From Marsupella aquatica (Eukaryota; Plantae; Marchantiophyta), in assembly GCA_973895155.1 (NCBI GenBank), contig OZ316898.1, positions 14,290,330 through 14,354,329 of the forward strand: a DNA stretch of 64,000 bases, given 5' to 3'. A program made the position numbers and the translations under genes. This document shows positions 1 through 27,135 of this stretch, piece by piece (within the stretch, counting starts at the first letter, position 1; every line of letters begins with the position of its first letter). A model generated the notes under the pieces. It worked only from the letters and a program-made list of their open reading frames with translations, was not told where the DNA came from and searched no databases.

Positions 1-530
1 ACCCCCCCATCACCTGCGACGTTTTCATGCCTAGACCCCCATACTTATTAAGTTGAAATTTTTTTTTCCTCCCTCTTTCTTTCTTCTAAGAGTCTAAAAT
101 CCAAATTGTATTGCCCCTATAATTTGTGAAGTAAAGTGTCACATATCAATATAAAATGCCTAGAAAGAAAAGATAAGTCTATGTCAGTACCTTGTGAAGT
201 CGTATGTCAGACATGGCACGCCCTGCAACAGTTCTTGCACCTTTGTCGACCTTAAACTTTGATCATTTCAATGCATCATTTATATTGTGTACCTAAAAGG
301 TCATCCCAATATAAACCTTACGTGCATAAGTGGGATGGCCTTTAAGGTCACAACATAAATAATCCATTCCACCCATTGATCACCAATCCCATGCTCCATC
401 CATACTCCATTTAAAACTTATGTTGAGAGATGTAACATGTGACGGAGGGGAATTGAACCCCTAATTGAGAAAGGATCTCAAGTTGCCAATCCGTCACCCC
501 CTATCCTATCCCACTACACCCACTAATATT

Positions 531-610
531 AACAAAATAAAACATATATACAGACTCTCAAAAACTAAACAACAAAATAAAACATATATACAGACTCTCA
601 AAAACTAAAC
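531..610. repeat. 40-bp tandem duplication downstream of the transposase
   Basis: AACAAAATAAAACATATATACAGACTCTCAAAAACTAAAC occurs twice in tandem. Confidence 0.9.
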
Positions 611-623
611 AGTAACATGATAT

Positions 624-3600
624 TCATACCATTGTTTGAAGATACTGATCCAAAGCACGTCTATCTATTGGATCCAACACATAGATACGATCCATAACCC
701 CTTCTTTCATGGTTAAACTAACACTAGCAATGACCATTTCAATATCCATCCATTTCAAATCAGTGGTATCATATCTGAATTCACTTTTGCTCTTACCAAT
801 AGGACTATACCAATTTAACAACAGTTCACAAATGTTACCTGATTGCCCTGCAAGTGGAGTTGGCCTATCCATCAAATCAATTGGTGACCGACAATTGCCC
901 CACCTACTGCCATACTTCTGTCTCATTTGGACAATCCGACCCAACCAAAAATATTTCTTACCTGCTGAGATTGCCTCCACCACAACCTTATTCTTTCCTC
1001 CCTTTCTTTTTCCAGATCTAGTACTTGGAGCAGGACTATCATCAGACTCAAATGCAATTGCACAATCAGTGCCAACATCAACAAAACATGAGTTAGGATT
1101 GACTTCTTGCACTTTTCTCTTGCCAGTACTATAGTATAGCACTTGTTTCACCCTTGTCAGCCTATCTTTTGACAAATGCGGATTTCCTACCAACTGGCTT
1201 ACCAGAGTGGATTTGTAAATCACCTTGCCTTCATAAGTAACAGTAGGCACTACCTTGGTACGATTCTGTACATTAGTTACAGCATGGACAACTGATCCAA
1301 ACACATGCCGAACTTCATGACCTAATGTCTCAAGCTCATCTGAGGGGTCTACATCAAACTGTATATCATCTCTGTGTACATCATCTGAATGCATCTCAGG
1401 AACAACAATGGGATCTGGTTCTGTTAACCATGCATCTATTCTATTCAGATCATCCTCAGGATCTTCCAATTCATGAAAATCTCCAGTTGGGCGAGGACCT
1501 ATGTCTGGTGGTTGGTGCTCTACTTGCTCCTCAGAATCATTGCAAACAATTGCTTCCTTCAGAACCACCTCTAGTGGCCAGGTCTCACTTTCCACAACCC
1601 AAGGACATGTCCACCATCTCTTTCTAGCTGCTGGTAAGGAACTTCGTGGAGACATCTGCAATTGATGCATAAGATCCTTAGCAGCAACAAAACCTTCTTT
1701 AAGGGCTGCAACCACTAATTCATTAGTCTCAATGAGAGAATAGTCAAGTAGATTTGGTGCTTCCTCCCCTTCCCCTATAGGATGAATCTTCCCCCATACA
1801 TGATCTTGTTTCTTATGTGAACGACCTATCTTCAAGCCTTCTGGTCCATATTCTAGGGCAGCAAGCCGGTTCAGTCCAACAGCACTATCCAATAGAGAGC
1901 CAAAATCATAATTCCGCTCATGGCCACTCATGCCTCCTACCTTGCTAAAGAAAATCTCACAACAATCTGAACCTAGCAAGTGGAAGGGAACACCTAGATG
2001 TGGGAACTTATCTCGAAAGGCACAAATTAACAGCACAATGAAATGACATGACATGTTAACATCATGAAAAGCCTGAATAGACATCATGTCTTTCTCAGTG
2101 TGTGCTGCAAAGTTCCCACCCACTGAATGGTCACCAAACCTCAACCACAATCTCCACAAACGTAGAAAGAATGAAACCTTGGATGCTAACACAATACGGG
2201 ACCTCAAATCATGAACTGGAGAAAAGAAAATATCTAAGTAATCTGCACAAATCTCCAAGTACAACTGAGTTCCTAAACTTCGTTCATGTTGTACATCTCT
2301 CCTCTCATACATATCTTTCAGACATTGCTGCACTCTTCTTGCTGCTATTCGTTGTGGACCTGCCCAATTCTGCCGGTCAGTCCTATTCACATCATCCCAA
2401 GCCATGCCATGTTCATGAATTGGATAATGATTGTAGACATTAGCTACATAAGATAAAGATGCATGTTGATCTCCTAGCACCAGTAAAGAAGACACTCTGT
2501 CTAAGGGGTTTATCATCTTTTTCCCATTATGAGGTTGGTCTTGGTCACCAAAGCCATACAAATCTCCATTTGGTAGAATTGAAACAGAGTATGTCCACCC
2601 TTCCCACCCAACTCCGTACCTTGGGTATGATCCATTCTGCCCTCTGTAATCTTCCAGCATCAGCTTTCGGCGACGTGCATCACCATCACTAGCATGTCCA
2701 AGCAAAGGGCCTACCATAGCTCTACAATATTCATCCCAAAAAGCCTTTAACTGGACCCAATGCTCTCGTACCCAAGAAGCTGTGAACTTATTACAAGTTG
2801 GAAGTGCACACACAGCCAATTTAGGTAAGGACTCATGCAGAGGATTCACAATCACAACTCGGGCATACATGCACTTGGGGCATTGTTCAAATGTACTTAC
2901 AATTTTATCATACCCCTCATCACCTTCACCAACTAGAATTTCCAAACCATAGGAGCATACATGCTGCTCTGAAGGTCCACAGAAACCAATGAGAGTATCA
3001 TACTTTGCCTCCCACCTGAAACACAGACATGCAATTTTTCAATATCACAGCAATTCCAGCCAAGTGCTACTTGTAAAGTCATTAAAAAAACAATTGGAAA
3101 AATGTCCAGTTCCAATTACCTAGGGCGTTCTTTGATCCTTGTTTCATCCTCAGCAAAGATAACAGGCACATCCCCCTCAATGCCCAATGAGTGCTTTGCA
3201 GCAGACAACACTCTAGCAATCTCCTGAAAGGTTTCCTTCCGTAACCCGGTTCGAAAAGGTGTGAGTTTTGCTCTATCACGTTTTAGGGTCACAAGGCTAG
3301 GGGCTGTCAAGTTTCGTGCAAAACAATGAGCAACTTGACGGCCCCCAAATTGGAACATAGCCTGAGCAATAGCTCGAGTCCTATTACTGTAACGATTACC
3401 TTTTGGCTTCCTGCCTAAATTGCGAGCTACATCCTTCAAGAAATCCCACAAACCCTCCTTACCACCAAATGCACCATTCCTGTGTCCATTCAAAATACTC
3501 CTAAGAAACAATCTCAAATCCTTCCTGTCTGCTGCAACTCCTAACAACTCCTCTAGTTTTCGTTTCCTGGTGCTCAAGGCACATACTTTCTGAGCCTGCA

Positions 3601-5200
3601 AAGCTAACAACCAACGCTCTTTTCGTCGCACAGAGTTCAGGTTGTGCACTTGATCTCTTAACTCTGTGTTGGTCAAATAATCCAAACGTATACCACCAGC
3701 AGTGGTTCGGCTCCCTCTGTGGACTACTGCTTCCGCTTCCCTGTGCACCCGTCCACGAAAATCATCTTCTAGTGTTATAGAATCACATTCACTACAAGTT
3801 AGATTTTCAAATCCTCCTCCATTCTGTGATAACCTCAAGCAATCCTTGTGTCTAAAACAGCCTGCTATACTCACAACACTCTCTCTACTTGGATGGAAAA
3901 CATCCAAGCAACAACTTGGCTCACAATGCCATGTAATTCCCCCAGACTGATCATCTAAAATGCCAGAAATATCATAAGATATACCCTTCCATAACAGTCG
4001 AGGCACACCTCTCTCTACCCATAATCCCCAGCAAAGCAAACTCAGACCAAGATCAACAGATTCACACACACCTGAACCTGAACCTGAACTGCTGCCTGTC
4101 CGGGACCCATCATCTTTAAAGAACTTCAAAATCCCGCTCTGACCAGGATGTAGGTCCCTAGAATCAGTCCTCTTTGGCCTGCCCCTCTTCCCAGACCTCA
4201 AGGCAAGCATTTTTGTGTCATGCCTAGTCTCCAATGCATCCAAGTGATCTCGACTCACTAAGTGTGTCCTCAAATTGGGCTCCAAGGTAAGCTTCTTGGG
4301 GCACAAGTCAGTGTGAAGCATTCCACAGACAGTACATCGAACCTTAAACAGGAAAGACCTGTTTACATACTCAGGAGTACTGGGATCAGGAACAATAGAG
4401 AATAGTTTGCCATCATCCCCAAGCTCAGCATTCAATCGTTGAACTATCTCAACACCTACTTTGATGGCGTCTGCATGATCATATTCTGGCTTCTCAGAGA
4501 TGTCTGCTACCTGAACCAAAGTAGAAGGAATGCCCCTTCTCCGACAATAGTTATCCTTGTGCTTATTGAAGACCAAGTGTTTGGTCTTAAAATTACTAAA
4601 GCAATTGGAGATGGATTTAGGGTTCTGAGAGTTGTCTGCATTGCCATAAGTTTCCCTACATTCAAGACACTCCAGATGCCCTCGAACATCTGTCCCCTCA
4701 TCCCAGGTACGAATTCTCCAATTGTGATCACCATAACCCTTCTTATGTACCCATTTCTCTAACCTCATCCACTCATCTTTCCATAGCTTTGATGGGACAT
4801 CTCCCATCAATTGTGACTCAAAAGAAGCCCTTACAGGGGAGGGTGCTAGTGCCGTTGGCCCCAGTTGTGGTGTCCCAGTATTTGGACCCAATGATGCAGG
4901 AGTGCAAGGATGACAGGGTACTGGTGGGATCCTCCCACCATCTCCAAGTTCTTGTTGTACAACAATAACTCTTCCATCCAGCTCAGACAGATCAATTAAT
5001 TTCTCATGTACAAGTTTCACTCGACCAGGAAGTCTCTCATCCCAAAAATCAAAGTCAAAGTCTAGAGTAGAGGCAATACGAGCCCTAAAATCATGTAGGG
5101 TGTGTCCTTCTTTGAATGACAAAACACAAATTGGTAAATCAGCCTTGTCATCCCCAACTTTGCGTATTAATTTAACAGAGTTGGGTTTAGGGGCTGCCAT
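624..5200 (-). CDS. P-element/THAP9-like DDE transposase, 2 exons (5200-3120, 3015-624), 1490 aa, apparently intact
   Basis: A GT..AG intron at 3119-3016 (104 bp) joins the 694-aa and 773-aa ORFs in frame, giving VIFAEDETRIKERPR-WEAKYDTLIGFCG. P-type motifs follow in order: DET, ASDGD, QDQPHNGKK..N (D-x2-H), DRQN, LGSDCCEIFFS. The N-terminal half has C2H2-like fingers (CLEC..H..H, CTVC..H..H). Confidence 0.85.
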
Positions 5201-5695
5201 TGCAATACAAATCTAGAACATGCATAGCACCATTGCTTTTGGAGTTGATAACAGAAAGACCTGCACAAATACATTTGAAATACACACAAGGGAAACACAT
5301 TAGGATCTTCAAGAGATGCAATGACAACATACACATTCTCATGTAATGTACATAATGTCAGCATACATTTAACAATAGAAGTGCTAATAGGCCAAAACAC
5401 TTTATAATGCAATCCATCATACATGCAAATGTATTCAGTGAAAATCATGATATACCGCTAAAGTTGGATAAAATATCTTTGGACAAAATATCCTTTTCGC
5501 CTGCTTTTCTAACAATTCCCGAAGTTTAGTGCTTCTGCTCATCAAAATGCAGCACTATTAGTGACCTTAATTATGACAAAATGTCAACACTAATAAAATT
5601 GGGTACTACCACCCATGATGCACCTTAAGTATGTGCCTTGCTCATACCCCACTAAGACGTTGAAACCTAAGTAATAGGTTTGTTCATTATTCAGA

Positions 5696-6370
5696 TCATT
5701 GGAGCCATGAAATGTGGTCCCTGATTGGAGTCTTGAGGTGTGGATCAATAGGATGACGGGGGCAATAAAACATCTGTCGCTGTTGTCCATGTGCTTCATG
5801 GTCCCAGATGTCCCTATCATGAGCGAACCCTTTGCTTTTGATCATCTGGAGACAATCTGTATGCCAGGCATTTGGACATCGTAGACATTGTACCATGTTC
5901 TTGACCATCTGACCCTCAAGACTCTGATAACATGTCACACATGTATGCAGTGGGCAGGACTTTGCATCAGCTACCAAACACCCAAAGCAATAAAATCGTA
6001 CACAAAAACGATCAGAGCATTTTCGCACAATTGTAGGTGACGGTCCCACAGTGCGGCACCCATAACACATGGCCTGGTCCTGGTTACAATTTGGGCAAAA
6101 CCATGGCTTCCCTCCATGATGGAGGGGAAGGACTACACAGGGGCAAGAGTCATTAGGGGCTTCATCTCCAACCACATAATGAAATTGCCTGTGACATGGC
6201 CCATCACAAATTACCAACTTCCCACCATGCTCACAAATTGCACAAACATGAGGGCTAGTTTGTAGAATCTCTTGCTCAGAGAACAACGGAATACGCAATA
6301 CCTCTTCCAAAGAGGCTCCTCTGTCAGAGGACTGTGTTGCTTTCTTTATGTTTGAAGTCCTTGTCGGCAT
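5696..6370 (-). CDS. EDM2-like composite (tandem) PHD-finger protein, 224 aa, transposon cargo
   Basis: Motifs CAICEHGGKLVICDGPCHRQFH, WFCPNC..CYGC, CPLHTCVTC, QCLRCPNAWHTDCL and YCPRHPIDPHLKTPIRDHI follow the order and spacing of the EDM2/NSD-type composite PHD region. Confidence 0.8.
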   Translation of the reverse strand: MPTRTSNIKKATQSSDRGASLEEVLRIPLFSEQEILQTSPHVCAICEHGGKLVICDGPCHRQFHYVVGDEAPNDSCPCVVLPLHHGGKPWFCPNCNQDQAMCYGCRTVGPSPTIVRKCSDRFCVRFYCFGCLVADAKSCPLHTCVTCYQSLEGQMVKNMVQCLRCPNAWHTDCLQMIKSKGFAHDRDIWDHEAHGQQRQMFYCPRHPIDPHLKTPIRDHISWLQ

Positions 6371-6686
6371 GGTTCAACTGCAATCATCACAAAGCACATC
6401 ACATATGAGGGGGACATGATGATAGTGAGCAATCCATAGACAAAGATAAGGTTAATCATAGCACCTGCTCCAATGATCTGCAAACCTCCCTCCCAGATGA
6501 AGTCAACTACACAGTGCAACCTGAACACCCACCAACCAAGACATACATAAATACAATGCCAGCTTGCAAAACTTTGCCACATAATGGGAATGAAAAATAT
6601 TCTCATATATCATGGATGGTACAATTGCAGCCTTGCAAACAAAGGCCTAGTCATATATGAACAACGCATCCATGTACTATCAAGGA

Positions 6687-7085
6687 CTACAATGTCAAGC
6701 ATCCATGGGTTGTAACCTTAGCTTGATCTGATATACTATCTGGGGCTACAATATCAAGCTCAGTTGAATGTGGAATACTATCAGGGACTACAATGTCAAG
6801 CGTGTCCGGGATGACAATCTTGCGTAAAAGACACTCATTTTGAGGCCAAATGGTTGGCCTTATACAAGAGCACTTCCAACGACGTGTGACAACTTTGCCA
6901 TGCTTTCCCATGTATGTCCTAGTAACAAGCCTTCCACGCATTTTCAAGCAGAAGCAATGGAACCATTCAAAATTCCCATCACCAACCCTGCACTTGACAC
7001 AAGGTTCACACCAGCAGCATTCATCTGGATGCTGCAGAAGGAGCTTCTCATAATTCGCTTCTAATGTAATGCCCAATATAGCCAT
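6687..7085 (-). CDS. Small Cys-rich protein, possible degenerate ING-type PHD finger
   Basis: CCWCEPCVKC...FEWFHCFCL...RWKCSC resembles the EWFH-x2-C...W-x-C signature of PHD fingers. Confidence 0.4.
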   Translation of the reverse strand: MAILGITLEANYEKLLLQHPDECCWCEPCVKCRVGDGNFEWFHCFCLKMRGRLVTRTYMGKHGKVVTRRWKCSCIRPTIWPQNECLLRKIVIPDTLDIVVPDSIPHSTELDIVAPDSISDQAKVTTHGCLTL

Positions 7086-8319
7086 GGCACTATTTTTTTA
7101 TACTCGGTGAATGGCCAGACGATTAGACGTGCAATGACAGGCAACTTACAATTCACTAGGTACACTATGTGTTCTAGCAAACTGCTTCACCGCAAGTGTT
7201 GGTGCTCACTGCTGCAAGCGCTGATGACAACCTCTACAATTCCTTTTGCAACCTGTGAACAAAATTGAAACCACCATTCAATTTCTAAGTTTCAAAAACT
7301 TCCCATTACATGAAGACAACCAATTGGCCATGCATGTTACTACAGCAATAAAATAATAACCCAATCGCTCAACAGACCTGAATAGCTAACCTGAATAGGA
7401 TCAAGTTCAGAATCCAGAATGGTAATGCCCTTGCCCAGAAGCTTGAGAAACAAAAGAGAATTTAAAATCAAGCACGAGCGTCATCCACGTCTTGACCAGG
7501 CCCGCCACCCAGTATGGCTGGAGGCTGTGGTCCCCCCTGGCTGAGTAAACACTTAAAGAAGTCTTCTCTTCTAGATGACTTAAAGAAAATTGCAGGAACC
7601 AGCCAACGGGACACCAAGGCATGTAATAGAGAACCAGATTTGTGCGGGTGTGTGGGGGACGACAGAAGTCAAGTTACATGATTTTTTTCCTGGGGTCCAG
7701 CCCATGGATGGAGATCATGTAAGGTGGTCAATCATGGCAAGTGCAATCATTGGAGACCTGTACTCGCGGTTACTCTAACGATGCATCCAAAAAACATGTG
7801 CGTCAAGTCGTCGATGCGGACACAGAAGGAGAGATGAGTATGGACAACGTCGAGACAAATGACGACAATACTGAGCTAGTATTCGGCTGGGAAGTTGGAG
7901 CTGGATCTCAGCAGTGGCTCCAAACCTTATCTGCGAGGGCATGGCGAGCTCTGGAGGACAAAATACTCAAAGAGCTTATCGCCATTCACGGAGCTCAGAA
8001 CAGGAATTTTATAGTTGAAAAGCTAAACGGGCAGATCAGGTGCTTCCTCGTCTATGACCGCTACCAGATCGACTCTAGGTGTGCCATGCGTGATAGATTT
8101 GGGCGTCAAATAGTAGCAAGCAAGCAAGTACGATCGTCAAAGTAGGCAGCGCCTACCTCCCGATTGAGCAACGCAGCAATGCAGCTCCAATCCTGGCACT
8201 CCGGTTTGAGATATCGCAACACTCCCTGCAGTAGCCACCTCCCGTTTCAGCAAGCTAGCAGCTCCCGTTTTAGAAAGCAGCAATGCAACACTCTCGACAC
8301 CCACCTCCCGGAGCGCAAC

Positions 8320-9180
8320 ACTCTTGCTCGATCCTTCACTCCCGGGTTCACTTCAAGCAGCAGCGCAGCTACAAAGTCTCGCTCTCCCCTTCACTCCCGG
8401 GTTCACTTCAAGCAGCAGCGCAGCTGCAAAGTGTCGCTCTCCCCTTCACTCTAATCAGCACACGCAACTGAGAAGTCTCGCTCTCTCCTTCACTCTAATC
8501 AGCGCACGCAACTGAGAAGTCTCGCTCTCCCCTTCACTCTAAGCAGCAGCGCAGCTGAGATGTCTCGCTCTCCCCTTCACTCTAAACAGCAGCGCAGCCA
8601 GGAACTCTTGGTCGATCCTTCACTTCAAGCAGCAACGGCAACAGCACAGCCGAGAGCGCAACACTCTCGCTCTCCCCTTCACTCCAAGTAGCAGCGCTTC
8701 ACTCGATCCTTCGCTCGATCCTTCGCCGAGAACTCTCGCTCTCCCCTTCACTCTCGCTCTCCCCTTCACTCCTTCGCTCGATCCTTCGCCGAGAACTCTT
8801 GCTTGATCTTTCACTCCAGCCGCAGCAGCAACGCAGCTCGATCCTTCTCTGAGAAATCTTGCTTGATCCTTCACTCCAGCCGCAGCAGCAACGCAGCTCG
8901 ATCCTTCACTCCAGCCGCAGCTCGATCCTTCACTCCAGCCGCAGCTCGATCCTTCACTCCAGCCGCAGCTCGATCCTTCACTCCAGCCGCAGCAGCAACG
9001 CAGCTCGATCCTTCACTCCAGCCGCAGCAGCAGTGCAGTCGAGAGCACAACAGGAGTCGATCCTTCACTCCAGCAACAGTGTAGTCGAGAGCACACTCTC
9101 GCTCGATCCAACCTTCACTCCAAGTGCAGTCGAGAGCACACTCTCGCTCGATCCGACCTTCACTCCAAGCAGGAGCACAA
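8320..9180. repeat. Subterminal minisatellite array (core GCTCGATCCTTCACTCCAGCCGCA, 24 bp, plus related 40-60 bp units)
   Basis: Directly visible tandem units built on (C)CTTCACTC and GCAGCAGC motifs. Confidence 0.9.
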
Positions 9181-10019
9181 CTGGTTTAGACCCCGTTTAG
9201 GCCATTTGCTGCAAGGTACAAACAAAAGAGACTCTGTTGAGGCAAAGAGCGGGTGGGGCCAAAGGGATAGTGGAGGGAAACGACACGGGAGGGACTGACA
9301 AGGGCCAATTGAGGTAAACGAGACACGTTAAACAGAAAAATTTCAAACTTAATCCCGGTCAAACCCTAAACGTGAGTCCCCATAAAACCAGATCATTCTC
9401 AAATTCTTGCCATGTTAACATCTTAGAAAAATTAGGAAAATATATTGGGAATGTTATGTGTGCCACGTGTACCAATGACATAGTGACACGTGTACTTTAC
9501 ATAGTCCGACACAAAGACCCCCTAACTTCTTTGTATGCCTTCCATCTACAAAGTCAAAAATATTAATATCCCTATTATTCTTACAAGTTGTCCAACATAT
9601 AAAGTTGGCCCTATTGTTCTTACACAAATCTTCTTAAGTCTTCCGAGAAACCCAATTAACGGACCCTATACTTCGTCGCACGTGATATGAGATTTTCGCG
9701 GAGTGAGACCCCCGAGAGTTTGCTTGACCTTTCGCTTGCTACTTTCTTCTGATGTATTATTTTGCTGACATTTGAATAGGAGGAAGGCGATGCTCTGAAG
9801 AAACAGTGGGAGGACGTTGTTGCCTGGCTAAATGTTTGGATTGAGCTCATTGTGGAGGTCACAATTGTCTGTACACATTGCGAAGGTCTGTATATGTACA
9901 TTGCTATTTTGTTGCATTCATAATCATTGCTTCAATTTGTAATGTGCTTCAACATCGTTGCCTTAATGTTTGTTGGTGCCTCACATTCATTCCTGCATTC
10001 ATTCCGTCCCGGTTGTGGA

Positions 10020-10470: not shown

Positions 10471-10962
10471 CAAGTTCAAGAGCCTGTCATTCAAGACGTT
10501 CGCTACTGCTAGTCAACTTTGAGCAGTGAAGGTTAGTGGTCTATTGCCTAATATTTTCACGCTGTGGTGCGTCCCATGGCTCCCTAAACCCAAGAAACCC
10601 CCCAGCTCAAGCCGATTCCCGCAGGTTTCGTGCTTGGCGAGGCCGTTTCCGCGGCTTAGCGGCATGGGACGCTGCTAACCTTCTACTACTACTATTAACA
10701 TTTTACACACATATACTGGACAGATCCTTCATCGGGTCATGAGATACGTAGCCGGCCTAATATAGGCCTTCCCCTGTCTTCCCCTGTCTTCTTGTTAGGT
10801 ATGTTTGGATTCCGCCGCCGGAATGATCCCCAATAGGCTTGGTTAAGCCGCTAAGACCTCTCTCAGCTCGACACATCCAACTCTCACTCCCCTGCTTACT
10901 TTCCTTCCTTCTGTTGATGTGGGCACTCTTCACACAAGTTAATGCGACACACAAATAGCAAA

Positions 10963-10985
10963 ATGACTCATTCTGACTGAGTCAT
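10963..10985. promoter_or_regulatory. Inverted pair of TGACTCA (GCN4/AP-1-like) motifs in the LTR
   Basis: ATGACTCA-ttctgac-TGAGTCAT is present in all four LTR copies, ~200 bp upstream (minus strand) of a TATA-like CCTATATTAGG near 10760. Confidence 0.4.
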
Positions 10986-11471
10986 ACCATGCACTTGCCA
11001 TACAAACAGTACATCTCATACACAAGTTCTGCGAACTAAGCCGTGAGGCCAACTCTATTCAGCTCTTAGGCATGAGGAAACATGAATATACACAAGGGTC
11101 ACTGTATGACTAACCGAGAGCTTCTCATACTACTTGATCCCAGCCCGGCTGGTGCAAACTAAAAACTTGCTAAAGAGGCCCTGAGCTCCCCGTTGCCCAG
11201 GTACTTATCCTGGTAGTGGATCCGCCATTCTTTGCATCGTAAGCCTAATCTACTTAACAGTAATCTACTTGCCCGAATCTACCTATGTACAGCAAGGCAG
11301 GAGCACAAGTGTTGCTCCTACCAGTGGGACCGCAATCCCACTAAGCTAAGTGTCAGGGCCGCTCCTGGTTCTGATCCTAATCCTAAACGTGGAGATCCGC
11401 GCCCGCCCTGCCCACTCACGCCTCCTCCCTCCACGTCCGCCCTCCCTAAAAGGAACGGCGCCCTTGCACCG

Positions 11472-14400
11472 TCACGACACCGGTGGTGGATCCTTAATGG
11501 ACGCCCCCAACGCTTCCTCCTCAGCCACTGCCGTAGGTTCATTCTCTGACAGATTACCTGCACTTGACTGAGTCAACTCTCCATCGGCCTGACTGGGTCC
11601 ACCTTCGGCTTCAGCCTCGACACCGGCCTCGGCAATACCCACGGCTTCGGCCTCCCCTTCCCCTAGGGTAGTTGGATCCCTAGCCGTGACCCTGTCTGGG
11701 GTCGGTGCTGGGTCTACCTCCTTGATCACCACGGCCTGTGAAGTCGTATTACTCCTTGACCCTGAAGGTTTCCGCTTCTTCTTCGTTGGTGGCTCGGCAG
11801 CTGGTCCCTTCCCCTTCCCACTTACTTTCGGCACTGGTGCAGGTGGCGCGGCTTGTCCTTCGGCAATTACCACCCCTGGTAACTGGTTTGTCCCAACAGG
11901 AGATGGACCTGCTGCAGCTAAGCATTTAAATACTGCGGCTTGTTTCTTTAGCCGCTCTGTTTGGTTGTCGGCCCGCCGCTGTAGGTTCTCCATCTTCCTC
12001 GTGATTTCCTCCAACTCCTCTTGGGTTTCATCCAGGTCCTTACGTGCCCCCTCCAGCTCGTTTTTGGCCTCCTCCTGCTCCCTGTGGGCTTCCTCCAATT
12101 CCTTCTTCAAGGTAGCCCTCTCCTCCTGGGTTGCTCTTAGCTCCTTGTCGAGCTCTGCAATGATGACAGACTCCATCTGGTTCATCTTGGCGTAAGTCTG
12201 TTCGAGCATCTCGTCCTTCTCCCTTAGGTCGGCCTTGAAGCTGGCCGTCAGGGACGCAAGCTCCTGCTGCAGTGCCATAATCCCTTGATAGGATTTCCCT
12301 AACTCGACCTCCTTTTGCTCAAGGGCTCCGCGGATTTTCTCGAGCTCCCCTTTCAACGCCCATTCCTTTCTTTGGGTCTCCGCCATGGCCCGGCTGTTGG
12401 CTGTTATGTGGGCCTCCTCTGTATTCTTCAGCTCTTGCTTCCACTTCTCCCTCTCTTTGATCATGTCGGCCAACTCTTCCTGCGTCTGAGTCAGTTTATC
12501 CTTGATATTCTGATTATCAGCCTGCGCGGTGTCCAACTGCCCCTGCATGATGTTCAGCTCATGTCGTTTAATCCGCAGTTCATCTTGGGCTTTCTTGGCC
12601 GCCCTTAGATCTTCAATCTCGGCTTCCATCCTCCTAAGCCGCCGAATGACCTCGTCCTTCTTGCTTCTCTCTAAAGCCACCGCTTCTTCTAATTGGTGCT
12701 TCTCCAACTGCTCCCTATGGAAAAAGGGTCCTACCTCCAATTCCTCTCCAAAGATGCCGAGCGCAAGTTCCCCACACATCTCACCATACTCCATGGCTCT
12801 ATTCTTAGCGTAGGTGGAGTAAGTAGAAGTGATCGGCATCGCCCATCGTGGCCTCTGCTCCCAAGCCGTCCTGCGGATCTCTTCAATCGTGGCTAGAGGT
12901 TTGCTTCCTTTTTCGGCTAGCCGCCTGATGTCCTCCGGCCAATCTCCTCCTGGTAAATCCTTTTCCTTAGCCAGGGCGGCCTCCTCCTCCTGCTTGATTC
13001 GCTCCTGAAATTCCTGCACCGTCTGTTTTATGCCGTCGAAGCTCGGGGGAGCAACATCTGGTGGGGGAGACTCAGGGCTACTCTGTTGGTTGGGGTCCCC
13101 TCGCACTACCCTTGGAAGTGTGGGGACAAACTGGCCACAGGTCCTTACTCCTGGAACGTGATGGTCCAACCCATAGCCGGAATTATCATGGCTGCAGTCC
13201 TCCACTGCCTCCTCTACCTCTTGGACGTCCGGCTTCTCCCTCTCCTCTTCGTCGGTAGGAGCTTCAGGCAATTCTGCCTCAGATTCGGAGCTTGAGGTTC
13301 CCACGTACATTCGAACACCTGGCTTGGATTCCGGCCTGATTCTCTCCTTGTCTCCAGCAAAGGGGTTTTCTCTTGTGAGCCGGTGTAGGCCTACCTCTGT
13401 AGTAGTGTCCTGCATTGTTGCCATTGCCGTTGTTGTTGCCGATGCCGATTTCTTTTCTTTCTCCAGTAGTTTCAGCAGACTCTGCATGCCTGGTTGTTGC
13501 ATCGGCAAGTCTTCCTTCCTGGGCCTAAACACCTGCTCGATCGTAGGACTAACAGGTGGTTGAGGCTTCTCAGCCAACGGCCTCGGCGTTGGAGCTTCCT
13601 CGGGTGCCCTTACCTGCAGGGGAAGTACCGGGGCAAAAGTCTGACCTCTGGCATACCGGCACAACAGCGGCATGTGATAGCCAAGCCGCGACACGCTCCC
13701 CATGCCGATTACCTGCTGCTCCTCCTTTAAGATCTTCTTCAATTGGTTGAGGAGGTACCCGTTGTAGTCCCGGCTTGGGTCTGGCCTTTCTGCCAGATAG
13801 ACCTGTGCCTTGCCGATCTCTGCCCTCGGCAAGTTACAATGCATGGTCACCCGCAAGAAGTCGATTATCTCTCCTATGTGCGGGTTGGTGCAGGTGTTCC
13901 GGAAGAAGCCATTCTTCGTTGATGGCCCGGGGAACGACCGGAACTCCTTGTCAGGCAAGGTCTTCCTGGTATCAACTTTGGTCTTATTGCCTATCGGCAA
14001 GCCAAACACTTCGGCAATTACCTTGGGAGTAAGATAGAAATCATTCCCATATATCCTCGTGCAATTGGTCTCGGGTTCCCATGACCCCACGAATTCTAAT
14101 AGGTCTGACTCCGGTACCTCCGGCTTCAGCCATGGTAATCTTACAAAGGCCTCCAAGCCGGATCCGGCCATGAAGCCTTGGTACTTCTTGGTCTGCATGG
14201 CCGTAAAGCATGCATCCTCCTCCCGTGCAAAATGTAGTTGCACCTCCACCGGTAGGGTTGCCGCCCAGCCCTTCCAGGTGTCATCCCTGGTTGGAATGGC
14301 CTTGATGGGATCGACCTCCTCCTCTTCGGCTTCTCCCTGCCTCCTGCTCTGCTGCTCGGCTGGCCTCTTTGGTGCCGCCAACCTCGTTCTTTTTGCCGGG

Positions 14401-14789
14401 GTGGCTTCATCGTTGACGGCCCCCTTCCTCTTCATCTCTGCTGCCGTGGAGGTTTCTCCTAGCACCATTGCTTGGGTCCACCTTTCCGTGCTACCCTTTA
14501 ATTCCCAGTGTATGTCGTTGCAGTTCTTGATGGCCTCTCGGATGCCGACGACGCTGTCTTTGCAAAACAGAAGATCGTCGAGTTGATTGGAAGTAGGCGT
14601 CCACAGGAACTCGTCCTTGATGAGTTCGCCTCCTAAGAAAGCCGTCTTCTGCAGCTCCCACAATCGAGCGAGCTCTTGCCGTTCTCGAGCTGCCCTTTCT
14701 GACTCCTCGTCCTCGTAAGTCTTGATGTACTCAGTTGCCCATTCGAACAGGCATCCCCAGAAATGTGCCGCTTGATTGACGTTGCTCAT
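11472..14789 (-). CDS. LTR-encoded accessory protein, 1105 aa (consensus 1191 aa from ATG 15047): PMD/Transposase_32-like domain + long coiled coil + low-complexity tail
   Basis: Uninterrupted ORF inside the LTR. Motif GLEAFVRLPW..LLEFVGSWEPETNCTRIYGNDFYLTPKVIAEVFGLPIG; ~270-aa E/K-rich heptad region. The N-terminal extension is blocked here by TGA at 14871-14873 but is open in the other copies. Confidence 0.85.
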   Translation of the reverse strand: MSNVNQAAHFWGCLFEWATEYIKTYEDEESERAARERQELARLWELQKTAFLGGELIKDEFLWTPTSNQLDDLLFCKDSVVGIREAIKNCNDIHWELKGSTERWTQAMVLGETSTAAEMKRKGAVNDEATPAKRTRLAAPKRPAEQQSRRQGEAEEEEVDPIKAIPTRDDTWKGWAATLPVEVQLHFAREEDACFTAMQTKKYQGFMAGSGLEAFVRLPWLKPEVPESDLLEFVGSWEPETNCTRIYGNDFYLTPKVIAEVFGLPIGNKTKVDTRKTLPDKEFRSFPGPSTKNGFFRNTCTNPHIGEIIDFLRVTMHCNLPRAEIGKAQVYLAERPDPSRDYNGYLLNQLKKILKEEQQVIGMGSVSRLGYHMPLLCRYARGQTFAPVLPLQVRAPEEAPTPRPLAEKPQPPVSPTIEQVFRPRKEDLPMQQPGMQSLLKLLEKEKKSASATTTAMATMQDTTTEVGLHRLTRENPFAGDKERIRPESKPGVRMYVGTSSSESEAELPEAPTDEEEREKPDVQEVEEAVEDCSHDNSGYGLDHHVPGVRTCGQFVPTLPRVVRGDPNQQSSPESPPPDVAPPSFDGIKQTVQEFQERIKQEEEAALAKEKDLPGGDWPEDIRRLAEKGSKPLATIEEIRRTAWEQRPRWAMPITSTYSTYAKNRAMEYGEMCGELALGIFGEELEVGPFFHREQLEKHQLEEAVALERSKKDEVIRRLRRMEAEIEDLRAAKKAQDELRIKRHELNIMQGQLDTAQADNQNIKDKLTQTQEELADMIKEREKWKQELKNTEEAHITANSRAMAETQRKEWALKGELEKIRGALEQKEVELGKSYQGIMALQQELASLTASFKADLREKDEMLEQTYAKMNQMESVIIAELDKELRATQEERATLKKELEEAHREQEEAKNELEGARKDLDETQEELEEITRKMENLQRRADNQTERLKKQAAVFKCLAAAGPSPVGTNQLPGVVIAEGQAAPPAPVPKVSGKGKGPAAEPPTKKKRKPSGSRSNTTSQAVVIKEVDPAPTPDRVTARDPTTLGEGEAEAVGIAEAGVEAEAEGGPSQADGELTQSSAGNLSENEPTAVAEEEALGASIKDPPPVS

Positions 14790-15162
14790 ACCCTCCTTAG
14801 GTCGATCGTCGGTATCTATTCTCTCCCCGAGTGCTTGCCTAAGCAGCTGACAGTAGTTGGCCTCCCGTAGTCATCTGCCTAGTTCGTGCTCGCAAATGAG
14901 CCACCATCTCCTGCAAGCGCTCCTTACCCCTCTCCTCTGCCGGTCCTTCTTCCCGTTGATCCTTCCTAGCCGCCGACGCTTAACGCGCCCTAACCCTAAT
15001 CGGGTTTTCACCCTCAGCCTTACCTCCGGCCTCTGCCCGGGTTCCATGGTTGCCCCTAATTGTTTATATTTTCCTTGTTTTGTCCGTATACTAAGGTGTT
15101 CCTAGGGTGCCTTCCTGCTTTACCCACTTAACCGGCCGAGTGATTCCTGTCTAGGCATCACA

Positions 15163-15175
15163 TAGCTCCCCACTT
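15163..15175 (-). other. Polypurine tract (AAGTGGGGAGCTA)
   Basis: Purine-rich run abutting the TG of the 3' LTR. It lies inside the integrase reading frame, whose stop codon (15151-15153) falls within the LTR. Confidence 0.75.
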
Positions 15176-18100
15176 AATTGTGAAGCGTCCTCGCGAAGAA
15201 CTTCATCTTCGTCCATATAGTATTCCTTGAGGCGGTCATAATGGATGCGAACTGGATATACCTCTCCCGTAATGTTGGCCAATTGTACGGAGCCATTGGG
15301 GAACATCATGGTTACTCTAAAGGGTCCTAACCAGCAAGTGTAAAGCTTTCCTGGAAACCTACTATACCTACTGTCATAAAGTAGCACAAGATCACCGGTA
15401 TGAATACTAACTACTTTTAACCTTTTATCATACTGCTGCTTCATGATATTCTGTCTATATTCTACTCTCTCGGCTGAAATCATTCTCGCTTCCTCTAAAG
15501 CTTCTAACCTATATTCTCGCTCCTTTAGGCTCTCCTCCGCTGAGGCTCTTTCCTCAATTGTAACTTGAAATGTCGGTATCTCAAGTTGCATGGGTACCAG
15601 GGCTTCTTGTCCAAAGGTTAAGAAGAAGGGTGTATGACCGGTAGTGGATTTATAGGCAAGATTGTAAGCAAAAACAGCAGCAAACAATTTATCATCCCAA
15701 TCGAGTTTGTTCTGAGCTACTGTCTTGTTCAATATCTTTCCTATGATTCCGTTTGCTCGTTCTGTCAACCCGTTTGCCTTTGGATGGTAGGGAGTAGTAG
15801 GCCTATGTTTAACTAAATACTGCTCATTTAAACGACTAATTATATCATTCAAAAAATGGGTTCCTCTATCACTAACTAATTCTAGGGGTGCTCCATACCT
15901 GGTGAAGATCTGCTCATACATGAATCTAGCCGTAGTAATTGCATCATCCTTCGTTGTTGGTCTGGCCTCTACCCATTTAGTTGCATAATCCGTAGCCAGG
16001 ATTATGTACTTGTTCCGTCGAGGGTGGGTCAGTGGTTTCAAAGGTCCAATGTAATCAATACCCCACTTCTCGAATGGTGCCAGAGGTAGAATAGGGTGCA
16101 GTGGATGCCAGGTGGACGCCCTTGGTCCTCCCGCTCGTTGACAAGGATCACATTGTTTGATAAACTGATAGACATCTTTGTGCAAGGTGGGCCACCAGTA
16201 ACCGACATTTAATATCTTCTTAGACGTGGTTACTGGGGCAAAATGTCCTCCGGCCTCCTCTCCATGCATGGCCCGTAGGACTCGTTTTACCTCTCTCTTT
16301 CCCAAACATCTTTGAATCGTGCCGTTGATTCCATGCTTGTGCAGTATGCCTTTAATGCACTGATACTGTCTGACCTTCCGCACAAAGACTGCGGCTTGCT
16401 CTCGGCTTAATCCTGGCTGTAATCTGGAAGTGCTGAGAAATTGTAAAATCTCAGGGTACCATGTACCAGCTATTTCCACAACGAATAGCTCCTCGTCGGG
16501 GAATCGATCATCGATGCAATCCGTGGCAGGTTTACCTGTGATCCTTGAAAAGAAGTCGGCATTGGCATGTAACTTTCCCGGCTTGATCCTCAGCTCATAG
16601 TCAAACTCCTGTAATAGCAAAATCCATCTTGCTACTCTGCCTGTAAGGTCCGGCTTATTGACTAGGTACTTCAAACTTTCATGATCAGTATGAAAGATTA
16701 CCTTGTACCCTAGTAAATAATGCCTAAACTTTTTACAAGAATAAATGACTCCTAATGCTTCTCTTTCCGTGGGAGAGTAGTTCCGTTCGGCATCGGCAAG
16801 CTGACGGCTTGCGAAGTATATGGGATGGTCCCTTCCTTTCTCATCCAACTGACTTAGTACTGAGCCAATACAGAAGCCCGAGACATCTACAAAAACATGA
16901 AAATCTTTGTTCCAGTCCGGTGCTATCATGACTGGGGCCTCTACTAACATCTACTTCAATTCTACCACCGTTGTGACTCGTTCGGGTGTGGGTTCGAAGT
17001 CTGCTCCTGCCTTGAGCATATTGGTTAATGGTAAAGCCAGCTTGGCAAAATCCTTGATGAACCGGCGATAGTAACCAATGCATCCCAAGAAGGATCTTAC
17101 ATCCTTTATGTTCTTAGGTTGCATGATATCTAGCCATACTGCTAGCTTACCTTTGTCAATCTCAATGCCCTTCCTTGATACCTTGTGACCTAGTAGCACC
17201 CCCTCGGTTACTGCAAAAAAACATTTATCTGGGTGTAACTTGAGACCCACCTCTCTACATCTCATGAAGGTTTTCCTGAGGTATTTAGCATGTTTCGATG
17301 CCTTCCCGAATACTACAAAGTCATCAATGAAGATTTCCATGAACTTTCTCAAGTAATCATGAAAAATGTTCACCATTAATCGTTGGAACATAGCTGGTGC
17401 GTTGCAGAGTCCAAACGGCATACGATTGAAGACATAGATCCCCCATTCCGTGATGAAGGCCGTCTTGATTTGGTCTTCCTGCCGAATCCTGATTTGGTTA
17501 TAACCAGAGTATCCATCCATGAATGAATATAGTTCATGACTGGCTACCATGTCTAGTACCATATCAGTAAACGGTAAAGGAAAATGGTCTTTTAATGTTG
17601 CTTCATTCAGCTTCCTGTAATCCTGACAAACCCGGATCTTGGGTTTACCATCGGGTCCAGCTTTATTGGGAACTATCACAATTGGAGACACCCAGTCTGA
17701 ATGCAGGACTGGAGTGATGAATCCAGCTTCCACTAGTTTGTCGATTTCTGTTTTGACCAGCAGGGAATACTTCGGGTTCATCCTTCGAATTGGTTGTTGA
17801 AATGATTTGGCTCCTAACATGAGATCAATTCGATGTTCCCCTAGTGTTGGATCTACTCCCTTTAGATCTTGGTGACTCCATGCAAACACATCCTGAAATT
17901 CAATCAATAAGTCACTGATCTCTTTCTCGAGCTCAGGTGCTAGGTTTCTCCCTAAGTTCAGTTCTCTTCCCTCTCCTAAGTCGAGCTTCCAATATTGCCG
18001 TGCTTGGATCATATTAATCTGCTTCTTCAAATTCGGGTCCAGTTCGGCTTCCAGTCTCTCTAATCTCATACCTCCATAAACTGGGATCTCGGCTGGACTA

Positions 18101-18323
18101 GCCGAGTCGGTCCCTTCCTTGGTGTCCATAGATTGTCCCCTTACCGGTCTATTCGGTTTTGAATTAGTGGTCGGCTCCCCTTCCTGCCTTGGCTCTGGAT
18201 CATGTCTGTCCATCTCATCCACTTCTTGCTCCTGAGAGTTAGGCCGCTGTGCTCTCTCGGCTTCTAATAGGGCCTCAATTTGTTCTGCCCTCGTAATCGG
18301 CTTGTATGCCGATCCCTTGGTAT

Positions 18324-21317
18324 TTAATTCCTTGCCGATGATCGATGGCGTTGTGGACCCCGTCGGCTCTGCCACAACGCCTGCAGAAAATCCACTGTCC
18401 CTGCTACTGCTCCCCACTTAGCCGTTTCATCCAATTGGTCTACATCCTTTACTTCCTCCGGAATTGCAGCTAAAAAGGTGGATTCTATTGTAAAGCAGTC
18501 CTCGACCTCTTCGTCTTCTTCTTCCAAGTCACCTTCCATTGGTTCTTGCCATAATCCGCTGGGGGGTACCTCTGGTCCAAAGACACCTTCTTCGGTTAGG
18601 TTAGTGAGGCATTCTAACCAACGTACTTCATCGGCTGACTCCAGTCCACTGTCGTACCCATCTACTTCCCTTATGCTTTTCCTACGGTCATCCTTAGTGT
18701 CCCAGGATACCGTGATAGAGGGGGTCCCGAAAGTGAACTGCTTTTTACCCCAATCTTCTATTACCTCGGCTAGGTACAGCCATGGCCTACCAATCAATAG
18801 CCGGAATGACGTAGGATTTACCGGCTTCATTACTACATAGTTAATGCTAAAGAAGATACCTCCTATCTCTGTCTTGATGCCGGTTAACACTCCCGTCGGA
18901 ATGACCTGATATCCATTGGCCATGTTCAACACTCTTCCAGTCATCTCCGGTGTTAGACCCCACCCTTTTGCTGTTGAATCAATCATAATACATACCCCTG
19001 ATCCTCCATCGATGGGTACCCGTAGTAATAATTCTCCTTGAATCATTAATGGTAATGCTGGGGCTCCTTGATCTTCTTCTATCATTAGTACGTCGGATCT
19101 GGTTGCTACCTTGGGTAATCTCGGCTTGCCGAGAATAGCCTTCCTTAATTGCTTCCGGAAGTACGGGCTATTTTTCAATAGTTGACCTACTGTTGCCGAG
19201 ACTCTAGATTCTAGTACATCTTTAGCCAGGTCATAGGGAACAATCGGCTTCTCTTCTGGTGGTGTTTCCGTCTTGGATTCGGCCAGTTTTGCCACGCTAG
19301 TCTCCACAGCTGTTGGGTCTTCCGAAGCAAACAATGCTTTTGCTCGTTTTACATCCTTGGCAATGGCTTCGGTATTCTCCAGGGTTTCTAATTCTCTTAG
19401 TTGTTCCTTAACACTAGCCGTAACAGAGGGGTAGAACAACTTAGGATGATCTCGATTGAAGTCGCTATCTTGTGAAGGATTGGTTTCACTGGTGGGCTCA
19501 TGGCTTACCTGTATTGCCGGAGCCCTCCCTTCTCCTTCTGTTGATGTTGACGAAGAGTCGATCCTTTCCTCCGTAACCTTCCCTTTATTTTTGGCCAGCC
19601 CATCCCACCTTTCCTTCCTTCTGGTAGATCGAGTAGAGACCCGGTAGCAATCATGATCTAAATCCTCCTCTGAGAAGGTTGATAGGGCTTCGGCCTCATC
19701 ATCAGATGGTACGAACTCTGCCTCGGCATCCTCTTGCCATCCTAGTTCGATGTGGTTGATTTGAACTCCTCCGGGGGTAGTACCTGGCGGTAAGATCTTG
19801 ATCGGCAAAAGCTTATGATTTGCGGCCAGGCCTGCCAACCAAGTAGGACATTGCCCTAGCATATGACCTTCCTGTCGGCATCCCATACATAGCTGAGCTG
19901 GTTGTCCATCACCCTGTTTGCGTGCATTCGGGCATTCTCTAGCAAAATGGCAAGGTTGACCACAATTATAGCACGCCGCAAATCTTTGCACATTCGGCCT
20001 AGGAGGTACTGACGGGTTCTGAATAATCCGAGGATACATCTCTCCTGGATTGTTCCTTAACCCTGACCATAGAGATGCAGGTCTGTTGGATAGGTCTCGT
20101 GCTCCAGTCTCACTGATGCCAAAATCACTATCAGCGGCATCTCCCAAAAAGTACTCTACTTCTCCCTGACATGGTCTGATCTCGGCCACATGCCGAACAT
20201 GATTAGTATTAAGCTTAGGACACGCATCTTTATGGTGTCCGGTTTTATAACATAAGGCACACCATACAGAGCTATCCTCCTGTACTACCTTCTTCTTTGG
20301 TTTTACCTCTGCAATGATAGCCTTAAGTTGCTCGGTAAGGGCTACGATGTTATCTGGTGGCTTAGTCTCCATCTTGACTTTCGTCTTCCCTCTCCTTCTG
20401 CCCTTCCTTTTCCTAGTTTTTTCTTCTTCAGAACTAGAAGATGACTCACTCTTGCTACTCCCACTATCCGAGCTTGACTTATCACTTCTAGACTTCTTGG
20501 GATGTTTCTTCTTCTTATCTTTTTTCTTATGGGGTGATCCCTCCTCTGATGAGGAACTCTCAGACTTAAGCTGTTTCTTCCGGCTTGTGATATCTGCATT
20601 AATGTATAATTGAATATCCTTAATTGCTTCGGCTAAAGTCTCCGGGTTCTCCTTCCTAATTGCAAAACTCATCTTCTGTGGCAAAGCATTCACCAACCAT
20701 TGAAGTTGCATACCTTCAGATGCATTGGTCTTTGTACGTCTTACCAGTTTCTGAAAGCGTTGCAAGAACTTCCTGAAGGATTTGTTCTCCTTGAACCGAA
20801 GTTGTCCCAACTTCAGCACTGCTAGTTCTGAAGTTCCAATGGGTCGAAACTCCTTAACAAAGAGTGTTTTGAAGATATCCCAGATGGCTTGATCTTCCAC
20901 ATCTAATGCTCTGTACCAAGGCCTAGCCTCACCCTTGAACAGGCCGGGAAGAATCTGCATCTTGATGGCCGATTCTCCATTTGCTGCAGCGGTTCCCTCG
21001 AAATCATCCAACCATTCGTCCGGATCCTCATCTCCTCTCCCATGAAATGCCTTGTAATGTATACGCGACCGCTGGCTCAATCTGGTCCCTGGCCTCTCGT
21101 CTGGCCGTGCCTCTGGTTCCCCCATGTCGGTTGGAGACTCACTTCTCCTTACCGACTCTTCTTCTGGTATGTCTTCTTCGATGCCACTTCCAGTTTCGGA
21201 GCTACCAACTCTTTCTGCCCCTCTCAGTCGCTGTGTATCATGCCACCCGGCGAGCTGCTGCAGTCGAGCTCTCTCCCGTTGAATCACTCTTTCTTCCCTC
21301 GGCGTAAGGTCAGTCAT
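18324..21317 (-). CDS. gag: Gag-protease polyprotein, 997 aa
   Basis: Retrotrans_gag-like capsid (F.G..EDP.EWL..F, A..WY), three CCHC knuckles, aspartic protease (PIDGGSG..LLIGRPWL). Confidence 0.93.
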   Translation of the reverse strand: MTDLTPREERVIQRERARLQQLAGWHDTQRLRGAERVGSSETGSGIEEDIPEEESVRRSESPTDMGEPEARPDERPGTRLSQRSRIHYKAFHGRGDEDPDEWLDDFEGTAAANGESAIKMQILPGLFKGEARPWYRALDVEDQAIWDIFKTLFVKEFRPIGTSELAVLKLGQLRFKENKSFRKFLQRFQKLVRRTKTNASEGMQLQWLVNALPQKMSFAIRKENPETLAEAIKDIQLYINADITSRKKQLKSESSSSEEGSPHKKKDKKKKHPKKSRSDKSSSDSGSSKSESSSSSEEEKTRKRKGRRRGKTKVKMETKPPDNIVALTEQLKAIIAEVKPKKKVVQEDSSVWCALCYKTGHHKDACPKLNTNHVRHVAEIRPCQGEVEYFLGDAADSDFGISETGARDLSNRPASLWSGLRNNPGEMYPRIIQNPSVPPRPNVQRFAACYNCGQPCHFARECPNARKQGDGQPAQLCMGCRQEGHMLGQCPTWLAGLAANHKLLPIKILPPGTTPGGVQINHIELGWQEDAEAEFVPSDDEAEALSTFSEEDLDHDCYRVSTRSTRRKERWDGLAKNKGKVTEERIDSSSTSTEGEGRAPAIQVSHEPTSETNPSQDSDFNRDHPKLFYPSVTASVKEQLRELETLENTEAIAKDVKRAKALFASEDPTAVETSVAKLAESKTETPPEEKPIVPYDLAKDVLESRVSATVGQLLKNSPYFRKQLRKAILGKPRLPKVATRSDVLMIEEDQGAPALPLMIQGELLLRVPIDGGSGVCIMIDSTAKGWGLTPEMTGRVLNMANGYQVIPTGVLTGIKTEIGGIFFSINYVVMKPVNPTSFRLLIGRPWLYLAEVIEDWGKKQFTFGTPSITVSWDTKDDRRKSIREVDGYDSGLESADEVRWLECLTNLTEEGVFGPEVPPSGLWQEPMEGDLEEEDEEVEDCFTIESTFLAAIPEEVKDVDQLDETAKWGAVAGTVDFLQALWQSRRGPQRHRSSARN
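18334..18393 (-). promoter_or_regulatory. Putative -1 programmed ribosomal frameshift signal (G GAT TTT + stem-loop/pseudoknot)
   Basis: Heptamer at 18393-18387 in the gag frame, 5-nt spacer, then a perfect 10-bp stem GGCGTTGTGG/CCACAACGCC. Loop GCCGA can pair with downstream TCGGC. pol is in the -1 frame. Confidence 0.75.
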
Positions 21318-21363
21318 TACCTACGCTTCCGTTCTAACTTCATATCTCACGGCTTAAGAAATG

Positions 21364-21382
21364 CCCCCTCCATCTAGCGCCA
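21364..21382 (-). other. Primer-binding site TGGCGCTAGATGGAGGGGG
   Basis: Starts with TGG 4 nt (TTTT) after the CA end of the 5' LTR. The cognate primer was not identified. Confidence 0.75.
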
Positions 21383-21386
21383 AAAA

Positions 21387-26905: not shown

Positions 26906-26984
26906 CTAGACCAGCATGACTGCTATTGATTCCACCATCTTATAACTTGAACCTTTTTTGTACTGGACCCATAAGACAACCTAA

Positions 26985-27135
26985 ATTATATGAACTTAAG
27001 TATTTGGTTGAAGGCTATGGACTTAAGTATTTGGTTGAATGCTATGGACTTAAGTATTTTGATAAATGAATTGGACTTAAGTATTTGGTTGAACGAAATG
27101 GAATTTTGGTGAATTGAAATGGACTTAAGTAAGTT
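26985..27135. repeat. ~25-28 bp tandem repeat (TGGACTTAAGTATTTGGTTGAA)
   Basis: About five imperfect copies are visible. Confidence 0.85.

Follow-up and report, generated by a model that had tools for sequence, protein, structure and literature searches.

A probable coding-intact member of a divergent P-superfamily transposon lineage in the liverwort Marsupella aquatica

The window analysed here is a 64,000-nucleotide stretch of the liverwort Marsupella aquatica (contig OZ316898.1, positions 14,290,330 to 14,354,329 of the forward strand). Its first 9716 positions are occupied, on the minus strand, by a P-like transposon with terminal inverted repeats (TIRs) and a total length of about 9.74 kb. 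The element encodes a transposase in two exons, and its ends are found again on a miniature inverted-repeat transposable element (MITE) near the far end of the window. From the alignment of the other end of this MITE to window positions 1-60, position 1 is found to lie 23 bp inward of the 3′ (left) terminus of the element. The transposase gene, its predicted catalytic residues, the termini and the presumed target-site duplication (TSD) are located as follows.

1-9716, minus strand: body of the element; its two subtermini are alignable with the ends of the MITE, and the window edge cuts off some 23 bp of the 3′ (left) terminus.
3120-5200, minus strand: transposase exon 1, 693 codons plus 2 nt.
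3016-3119, minus strand: intron, GT-AG, 104 nt, phase 2.
624-3015, minus strand: transposase exon 2, 796 codons plus the stop, encoding the remainder of the RNase H domain, an alpha-helical insertion domain and the C-terminal region.
3146-3148, minus strand: codon of D685, the predicted first catalytic Asp, in the motif AEDET (exon 1 residues 683-687).
2679-2690, minus strand: motif SDGD (exon 2 residues 110-113), of which the first Asp, D111 (2685-2687), is the predicted second catalytic residue.
2529-2540, minus strand: motif D-x2-H, here DQPH (exon 2 residues 160-163, D160 and H163).
1944-1967, minus strand: motif DCCEIFFS (exon 2 residues 351-358), of which the Glu, E354 (1956-1958), is the predicted third catalytic residue.
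9703-9716, minus strand: 5′ TIR of 14 bp, CTCGGGGGTCTCAC read inward, recognised by its 14-mer count.
9717-9724, no strand: flanking 8 bp, AGTTTGCT, the presumed right TSD copy of the main element, inferred from the 8-bp TSD of the MITE.
9674-9686, minus strand: subterminal motif ATCAC[C/G]TGCGACG, 13 bp, lying 31-43 bp inside the 5′ end.
9-21, plus strand: the same subterminal motif, inverted, at the 3′ end.

The gene model joins two open reading frames (ORFs) of the minus strand, 3116-5200 (694 aa, with an ATG start) and 624-2945, the frame of the latter being open upstream as far as 3015. A splice donor, AG/GTAATT, is present at 3120/3119 and an acceptor, TTTCAG/G, at 3016/3015; removal of the intron joins both frames into 1490 codons. 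The homolog P0214, an uninterrupted ORF of 1492 aa on a 6.6-kb contig (L002, in which no TIRs were found), is colinear with the spliced protein from residue 1 of exon 1 through the end of exon 2. It crosses the exon junction free of gaps, with DET, seven residues and WEA following one another in P0214 and the window alike, and the spacing between AEDET and SDGD is 120 residues in the spliced model and in all contiguous homologs. A relative on contig L003, 58-66% identical, also has both exons open and carries a 139-nt GT-AG intron at the codon identical to the intron site of the window. The introns of the two are about 30% identical and unalignable, whereas the exons are 61-69% identical, with a ratio of nonsynonymous to synonymous substitution rates (dN/dS) of about 0.13 for each exon, a value that is approximate as dS is saturated. 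In the decayed copy L001 from Riccia sorocarpa a gap of about 160 nt falls at the intron position. Contigs from sequencing runs that carry the stretch retain the intron, and one of them (record 4 of run X1) spans 2402-3531 without differences. Other copies of the family in runs X1-X3 diverge exactly at the boundary of exon 2 and the intron, with loose ends at 3018 and 2975-2977, which suggests subfamilies with unrelated intron sequence.

The D, the D-G, the D-x2-H and the E of the catalytic motifs are invariant among 43 homologs of about 20-30% identity, and the window's protein keeps all of them. In a structural model of the homolog P0005 the Asp of AEDET is on strand β1, the first Asp of SDGD is at the end of β4 and the Glu is on α4; this Glu, belonging to a D-x2-E-x-FF motif, lies on the helix after an insertion of about 160 residues that is itself helical. 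An earlier reading of this DNA, made from its letters and referred to here as the sequence-only reading, had proposed that a 104-bp GT-AG intron fuses two ORFs into a 1490-aa frame with DET, SDGD, D-x2-H and DCCEIFFS motifs, in an apparently intact copy. The splice signals, the intron site of L003 and the colinearity of P0214 bear out the fusion, and all four motifs were located in exons 1 and 2. The copy is intact in its coding part, with both exons open, every invariant residue kept and colinearity with P0214.

The fold was examined through an AlphaFold2 model of P0005, a homolog of 865 aa that has 42% identity to exon 2 and also contains the AEDET strand; in its core the model has a predicted local distance difference test score (pLDDT) of about 90. 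A Foldseek search of the PDB gave as its only significant matches two Drosophila P-element transposase strand-transfer complexes, the best being 6p5a_A (E 5.5e-9, probability 1.00, TM 0.66), with RAG1, Transib and Hermes at E ~1e-2 or worse. Alignment of P0005 with residues 168-569 of the P transposase by VIA-align gave a Z score of 25.1 and a root-mean-square deviation (rmsd) of 3.6 Å over 374 residues, the values for other folds being Z 10.4 for Transib, 9.6 for RAG1 and 8.4 for Hermes (rmsd 7.8 Å). An all-helical insertion domain is visible in the model, with helices at 265-415 between a strand at 222-224 and the Glu-bearing helix at 429-438.

At the level of sequence, the curated P-element profiles compared were PF12017, PF21787, PF21788, PF21789 and PF12596. 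Two proteins, P0166 (E 6e-94 against the family profile) and P0086 (E 4.5e-139), pass the gathering score of 23 for PF12017, the P-element helix-turn-helix (HTH) family, with 24.1 and 23.7 bits at the expected place, and P0166 also has a weak match to PF21787 (TNP-like_RNaseH_N). The language-model neighbours that bear any Pfam family all bear TNP-like families. The fold, the invariant motifs, this bridge through Pfam and the 8-bp TSD described below assign the element to the P superfamily or to its immediate neighbourhood. It very probably belongs to a divergent lineage of cut-and-paste transposons within that superfamily, present in a liverwort as a copy that is coding-intact and structurally nearly complete. 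The same evidence backs the P-related transposase lineage put forward in the sequence-only reading, which had looked to a best structural match with hAT, MULE or a non-transposase as a ground for abandoning it; the best match was to the P-element transposase. That reading had set the element against angiosperm genomes; the host is not an angiosperm but a liverwort, the closest named homologs being from Riccia.

The remaining copies of the family in the window are a MITE and two pieces of a divergent second copy.

62349-62646, plus strand: non-coding MITE of 298 bp, of the same family and in the opposite orientation, with the same termini and subtermini; TSD ACTACATG at 62341-62348 and 62647-62654.
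26151-27809, plus strand: fragment of the second copy, consisting of a frameshifted PHD gene (26151-26873) and then transposase aa 1-158 (27285-27809).
59290-60693, plus strand: transposase aa 145-518 of the second copy, a probable continuation of it, separated from the first piece by 31.5 kb with nested retrotransposons.

The 14-mer CTCGGGGGTCTCAC has three matches in the 64-kb window, where 0.32 would be expected, at 9703-9716 (minus), 62349-62362 (plus) and 62633-62646 (minus), and position 9716 is the last base of the element end GTGAGACCCCCGAG. Over the first 110 bp or so inside, the left end of the MITE and the 5′ end of the element align at 85%. The motif ATCAC[C/G]TGCGACG has only four matches in the window, one at each of the four termini of the element and the MITE, about 32 bp in and inverted; from its sequence and placement it is a candidate transposase-binding site. 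The two flanks of the MITE match at 8 of 8 positions (chance odds ~1.5e-5), and since it is flanked by this perfect 8-bp ACTACATG the family can be said to make 8-bp TSDs. The CTC-type element end noted earlier is thus present as GTGAGACCCCCGAG reaching 9716, as is the MITE with common ends and an 8-bp TSD, seen in the inverted 14-mer pair at 62349/62646 with ACTACATG on both flanks. Three forms had been claimed together, one copy in full, another that is divergent and the MITE, and all are present, but the second copy is a broken, frameshifted fragment that ends at aa 518, no transposase sequence of it having been found past that residue.

The protein has the core fold and the order of parts of the Drosophila P transposase (PDB 6p5a/6pe2) and vertebrate THAP9, namely a coiled coil, an HTH region and an RNase H domain split by a helical insertion between β5 and α4, and it has the D..D..D-x2-H..E signature in common with them. 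The spacing between the second Asp and the Glu is about 240 residues, as against 228 in Drosophila P (D303-E531, PMC7776569). Drosophila P likewise has an 8-bp TSD, short TIRs with internal subterminal repeats and associated MITEs. The two differ in that their sequence identity is only about 13%, the protein is 1490 aa long rather than 751 aa, the spacing between the first and second Asp is about 120 residues rather than 73, and the termini begin with CTC rather than CA. The THAP domain of Drosophila P and THAP9 is replaced here by two C2H2-type modules and a Cys-rich β domain, and a C-terminal β domain, which may be BAH-like, and a separate PHD-finger gene are extra. The fungal P entries of Repbase (Pucciniales and Allomyces; PMC5751038), compared by the report of them alone, are also non-animal P members; the host here is a land plant.

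A number of points weigh against placing the element in the P superfamily. The fold evidence derives from the homolog P0005 and not from the window's own protein, and the insertion domain may be the counterpart of the GTP-binding domain in Drosophila P, a correspondence drawn from its presence in the modelled fold alone. Pfam searches of both exons down to E 10 gave no match, sequence searches of the PDB with single sequences and with the family profile gave chance-level matches only, and no Pfam match to THAP was found in the window or in about 60 homologs. The termini start with CTC and not CA(TG) as in P; terminal sequence varies inside superfamilies, which makes a CA(TG) start a weak criterion. 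The left TIR and left TSD of the main copy lie past the window edge, so that a single flank is visible, and they were not recovered in two metagenome pattern scans with the terminus and the subterminal motif, which returned no matches, nor through a look-up of the exact exon 1 product, for which there was no record. No spliced joint at 3016-3119 was seen in the contigs of five runs carrying the stretch, none of which is recorded as RNA; this result does not demonstrate that the element is silent. To our knowledge Kolobok is without a solved structure, so P and Kolobok are inseparable by fold alone.

An element of the hAT superfamily would account for the 8-bp TSD and for the N-terminal fingers of the form C-x2-C...H-x5-H, since hAT elements make 8-bp TSDs, carry BED/C2H2-type fingers at the N-terminus and are common in plants. 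Members such as Ac and Hermes also have an RNase H domain with a helical insertion, and Hermes is among the structural matches. However, the match to Hermes is weak, at Z 8.4 and an rmsd of 7.8 Å against Z 25 for P, the motif is D-x2-H and not the C-x2-H of hAT, and the termini are not of the YARNG type. Neither the hATC dimerisation domain nor any other hAT Pfam family was found in the approximately 60 family members scanned. With its motif, the missing hATC and the weak Hermes fold match counting against it, hAT was rejected and is hardly credible. It could also be supposed that the element is a Kolobok, or a member of some other superfamily for which no structure has been solved, and that its likeness to P arises from a gap in the PDB. 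Kolobok and P are considered to be relatives, and in animals THAP is found in both; the PDB fold search returned no Kolobok chain and the window's protein fails every Pfam P model. The TSD of Kolobok is TTAA (4 bp), in contrast to the 8-bp ACTACATG here, and Kolobok was rejected on this difference; P0166 and P0086, by passing the P-element HTH threshold, P0166 by touching TNP-like_RNaseH_N, and the Pfam-bearing atlas neighbours, by carrying TNP-like families only, also speak for P. An origin in Kolobok or a superfamily of that kind is very unlikely. Transib/RAG1 was rejected as well, the TSD being 8 bp and not 5 bp and the Z scores 10.4 and 9.6 against 25.1 for P.

A further explanation accepts the P likeness and holds that the copy is a dead relic, or a gene domesticated by the host as THAP9 was. 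It would fit with the finding of no RNA evidence among the runs carrying the stretch, with the nest of retrotransposons that surrounds the element and with the badly decayed state of the other copy in the window. Domestication is unlikely, given that the gene is enclosed by TIRs and subterminal motifs that are specific to the family and common to a MITE with a perfect TSD and that the stretch behaves as a multi-copy repeat, in short and very deep unitigs. Against a dead relic stand the open exons, the retention of all invariant residues and purifying selection in the family (dN/dS ~0.13). Taken together, a dead or domesticated P-like element is a real possibility that we place somewhat below even.

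For the P-superfamily element itself, several observations bear on mobility. DNA runs labelled as three organisms contain near-identical sequence, the likeness being ≥99%, 95-99% and 90-95%. The unitigs of the stretch are broken at variant sites into many short, very deep pieces, as would be the case for a multi-copy family. The MITE with its perfect TSD, the second copy and the near-identical copies in the runs of three organisms argue for mobility of the family. The chances that the copy in the window is autonomous would seem roughly even.

Outside the catalytic core, the element carries the following domains and features, those of exon 1 being taken from a structural model with a mean pLDDT of 70.

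Exon 1, aa 8-66: small N-terminal β/α domain in the model.
Exon 1, aa 178-214 and 289-319: two C2H2-type modules in the model, each a helix with a C-x2-C...H-x(3-5)-H finger.
Exon 1, aa ~385-500: Cys-rich β domain, confidently modelled, with no listed match.
Exon 1, aa 511-543: modelled coiled-coil helix of 33 residues, at the place of the leucine zipper of P.
Exon 1, aa 549-672: helical HTH region in the model.
660-1094, minus strand: C-terminal β-rich domain, exon 2 residues 642-786.
5696-6370, minus strand: intact accessory gene, lying some 500 bp upstream of where the transposase begins and encoding 224 aa with tandem PHD fingers (NSD/EDM2-like variant type).
8239-9169, no strand: tandem repeats with a unit length of 23-60 bp, covering about 0.9 kb of the non-coding sequence on the 5′ side.

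The best structural matches of the C2H2-type modules are to matrin/U1-type and ZBED-type fingers (Z 5-7). The C-terminal β-rich domain is preceded by a disordered acidic linker. In the homolog model this domain aligns with the plant BAH domains of EBS, AIPP3 and SHL at Z 6.5-7.4 over 84-88 residues, and further BAH matches are to ASI1, DNMT1, MTA1 and DIM2, the overall range being Z 6-7.4 over about 85 residues, scores that lie near the noise level of the method. No support for BAH at the level of sequence was found, including in an atlas search of the C-terminal part, and the domain is described as BAH-like only tentatively, from the model.

The PHD protein matches PF23004 at 5.8e-8 (33.1 bits, cut-off 27), and its stand-alone homologs are 213-304 aa long with 44-82% identity. 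The order of PHD gene and then transposase recurs in the divergent second copy (26151-27809), and because the gene order is the same there the PHD gene can be counted as part of the element for no fewer than two subfamilies. Upstream of the decayed Riccia copy L001 no such gene was found, and contig L005, which has a PHD homolog, showed no P-like transposase alongside. A 132-codon ORF upstream of the PHD gene (6687-7085, minus strand) has no Pfam match and no counterpart in the second copy, and is unlikely to be a gene. A C-terminal PHD finger (Pfam PF00628) is also present in some distant family members (P0150, P0166), preceded by a stretch that by eye resembles an Ulp1-type protease. Other distant members of the transposase family include one with a SAP domain and one with a PTM/DIR17-like Tudor domain.

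A profile of 23 homologs recovered 6023 cluster representatives at E≤1e-3, 1162 of them also at E≤1e-30. The named homologs are from the liverworts Riccia sorocarpa and R. fluitans, the fern Adiantum nelumboides and Daphnia pulex, and by language-model comparison the window's protein lies closest to Basidiomycota proteins that bear no annotation. A scan of bacterial and archaeal contigs, a collection confined to those groups, gave no relatives of the transposase, a blank that carries no weight given that scope. On the domains predicted from sequence, the transposase family has repeatedly acquired chromatin-related modules. A 2019 survey lists seven DNA-transposon superfamilies in plants, P not included (PMC6839031), plants and fungi lack THAP domains according to a review of P elements (PMC7776569), and fungal P elements are reported from Pucciniales and Allomyces only (PMC5751038). 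The literature searched, Repbase not included, held no paper on P-like elements in bryophytes and none on a BAH-domain transposase. To that extent the lineage may still be called possibly undescribed, as the sequence-only reading had it, but the Pucciniales and Allomyces entries of Repbase may fall in the same clade as the liverwort element.

The main element adjoins a Ty3/Gypsy retrotransposon within a nest of retrotransposons. The Ty3/Gypsy element (10563-25509, minus strand) has its Gag at 18324-21317, reverse transcriptase at 16951-18417 and RNase H with integrase at 15151-16950. On either side of it lie direct repeats, each about 4.6 kb long (10563-15162 and 21387-25509), that are 98.9% identical and contain a 1105-codon ORF (11472-14789) with no Pfam match; long terminal repeats of 4.6 kb bearing a large open frame are unusual. 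Two further copies of this 4.6-kb ORF-bearing unit, 98-99% identical and mutually inverted, are present at 30478-35116 and 38404-43006, both within the 31.5 kb that split the second P-like copy. A run of same-strand ORFs of 170-385 codons extends over 49380-58167 (plus strand). Three of these (49380-50189, 51887-53044 and 54931-56013) gave no Pfam match and no similarity to the other ORFs compared, and the region is probably a decayed mobile element of unknown type.

Transposition of the P-like element might be envisaged as follows. With its N-terminal C2H2-type fingers and its HTH region the transposase would bind the subterminal motifs and the termini, the coiled coil mediating dimerisation. 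Excision and then insertion, at a stagger of 8 bp, would rely on D685 in exon 1 together with D111 and E354 in exon 2, and the enzyme would presumably also mobilise MITEs that retain only the ends. More speculatively, the PHD gene, and perhaps the BAH-like domain, may couple the element to histone marks, either in the choice of target or in modulating silencing. In its broadest form the proposal is of a THAP-less sister lineage of P, invisible to Pfam and spread across land plants, fungi and animals, in which the liverwort PHD gene and BAH-like domain steer integration or counter silencing and of which the copy here is active and autonomous. As a whole this is a doubtful proposition; if it were true, the copy here would be a candidate native transposon tool for bryophytes.

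A coding-intact element with the P fold, its ends, a TSD and a MITE in a liverwort would widen the host range of the P superfamily, and would indicate that the P catalytic core is able to work with a different DNA-binding front end. It also points to a very large protein family that domain libraries have missed and whose members are annotated as ‘hypothetical protein’. The pairing with modules of the histone-reader type may offer a lead on the dealings between transposons and chromatin, and the intact copy provides a concrete sequence for transposition assays.

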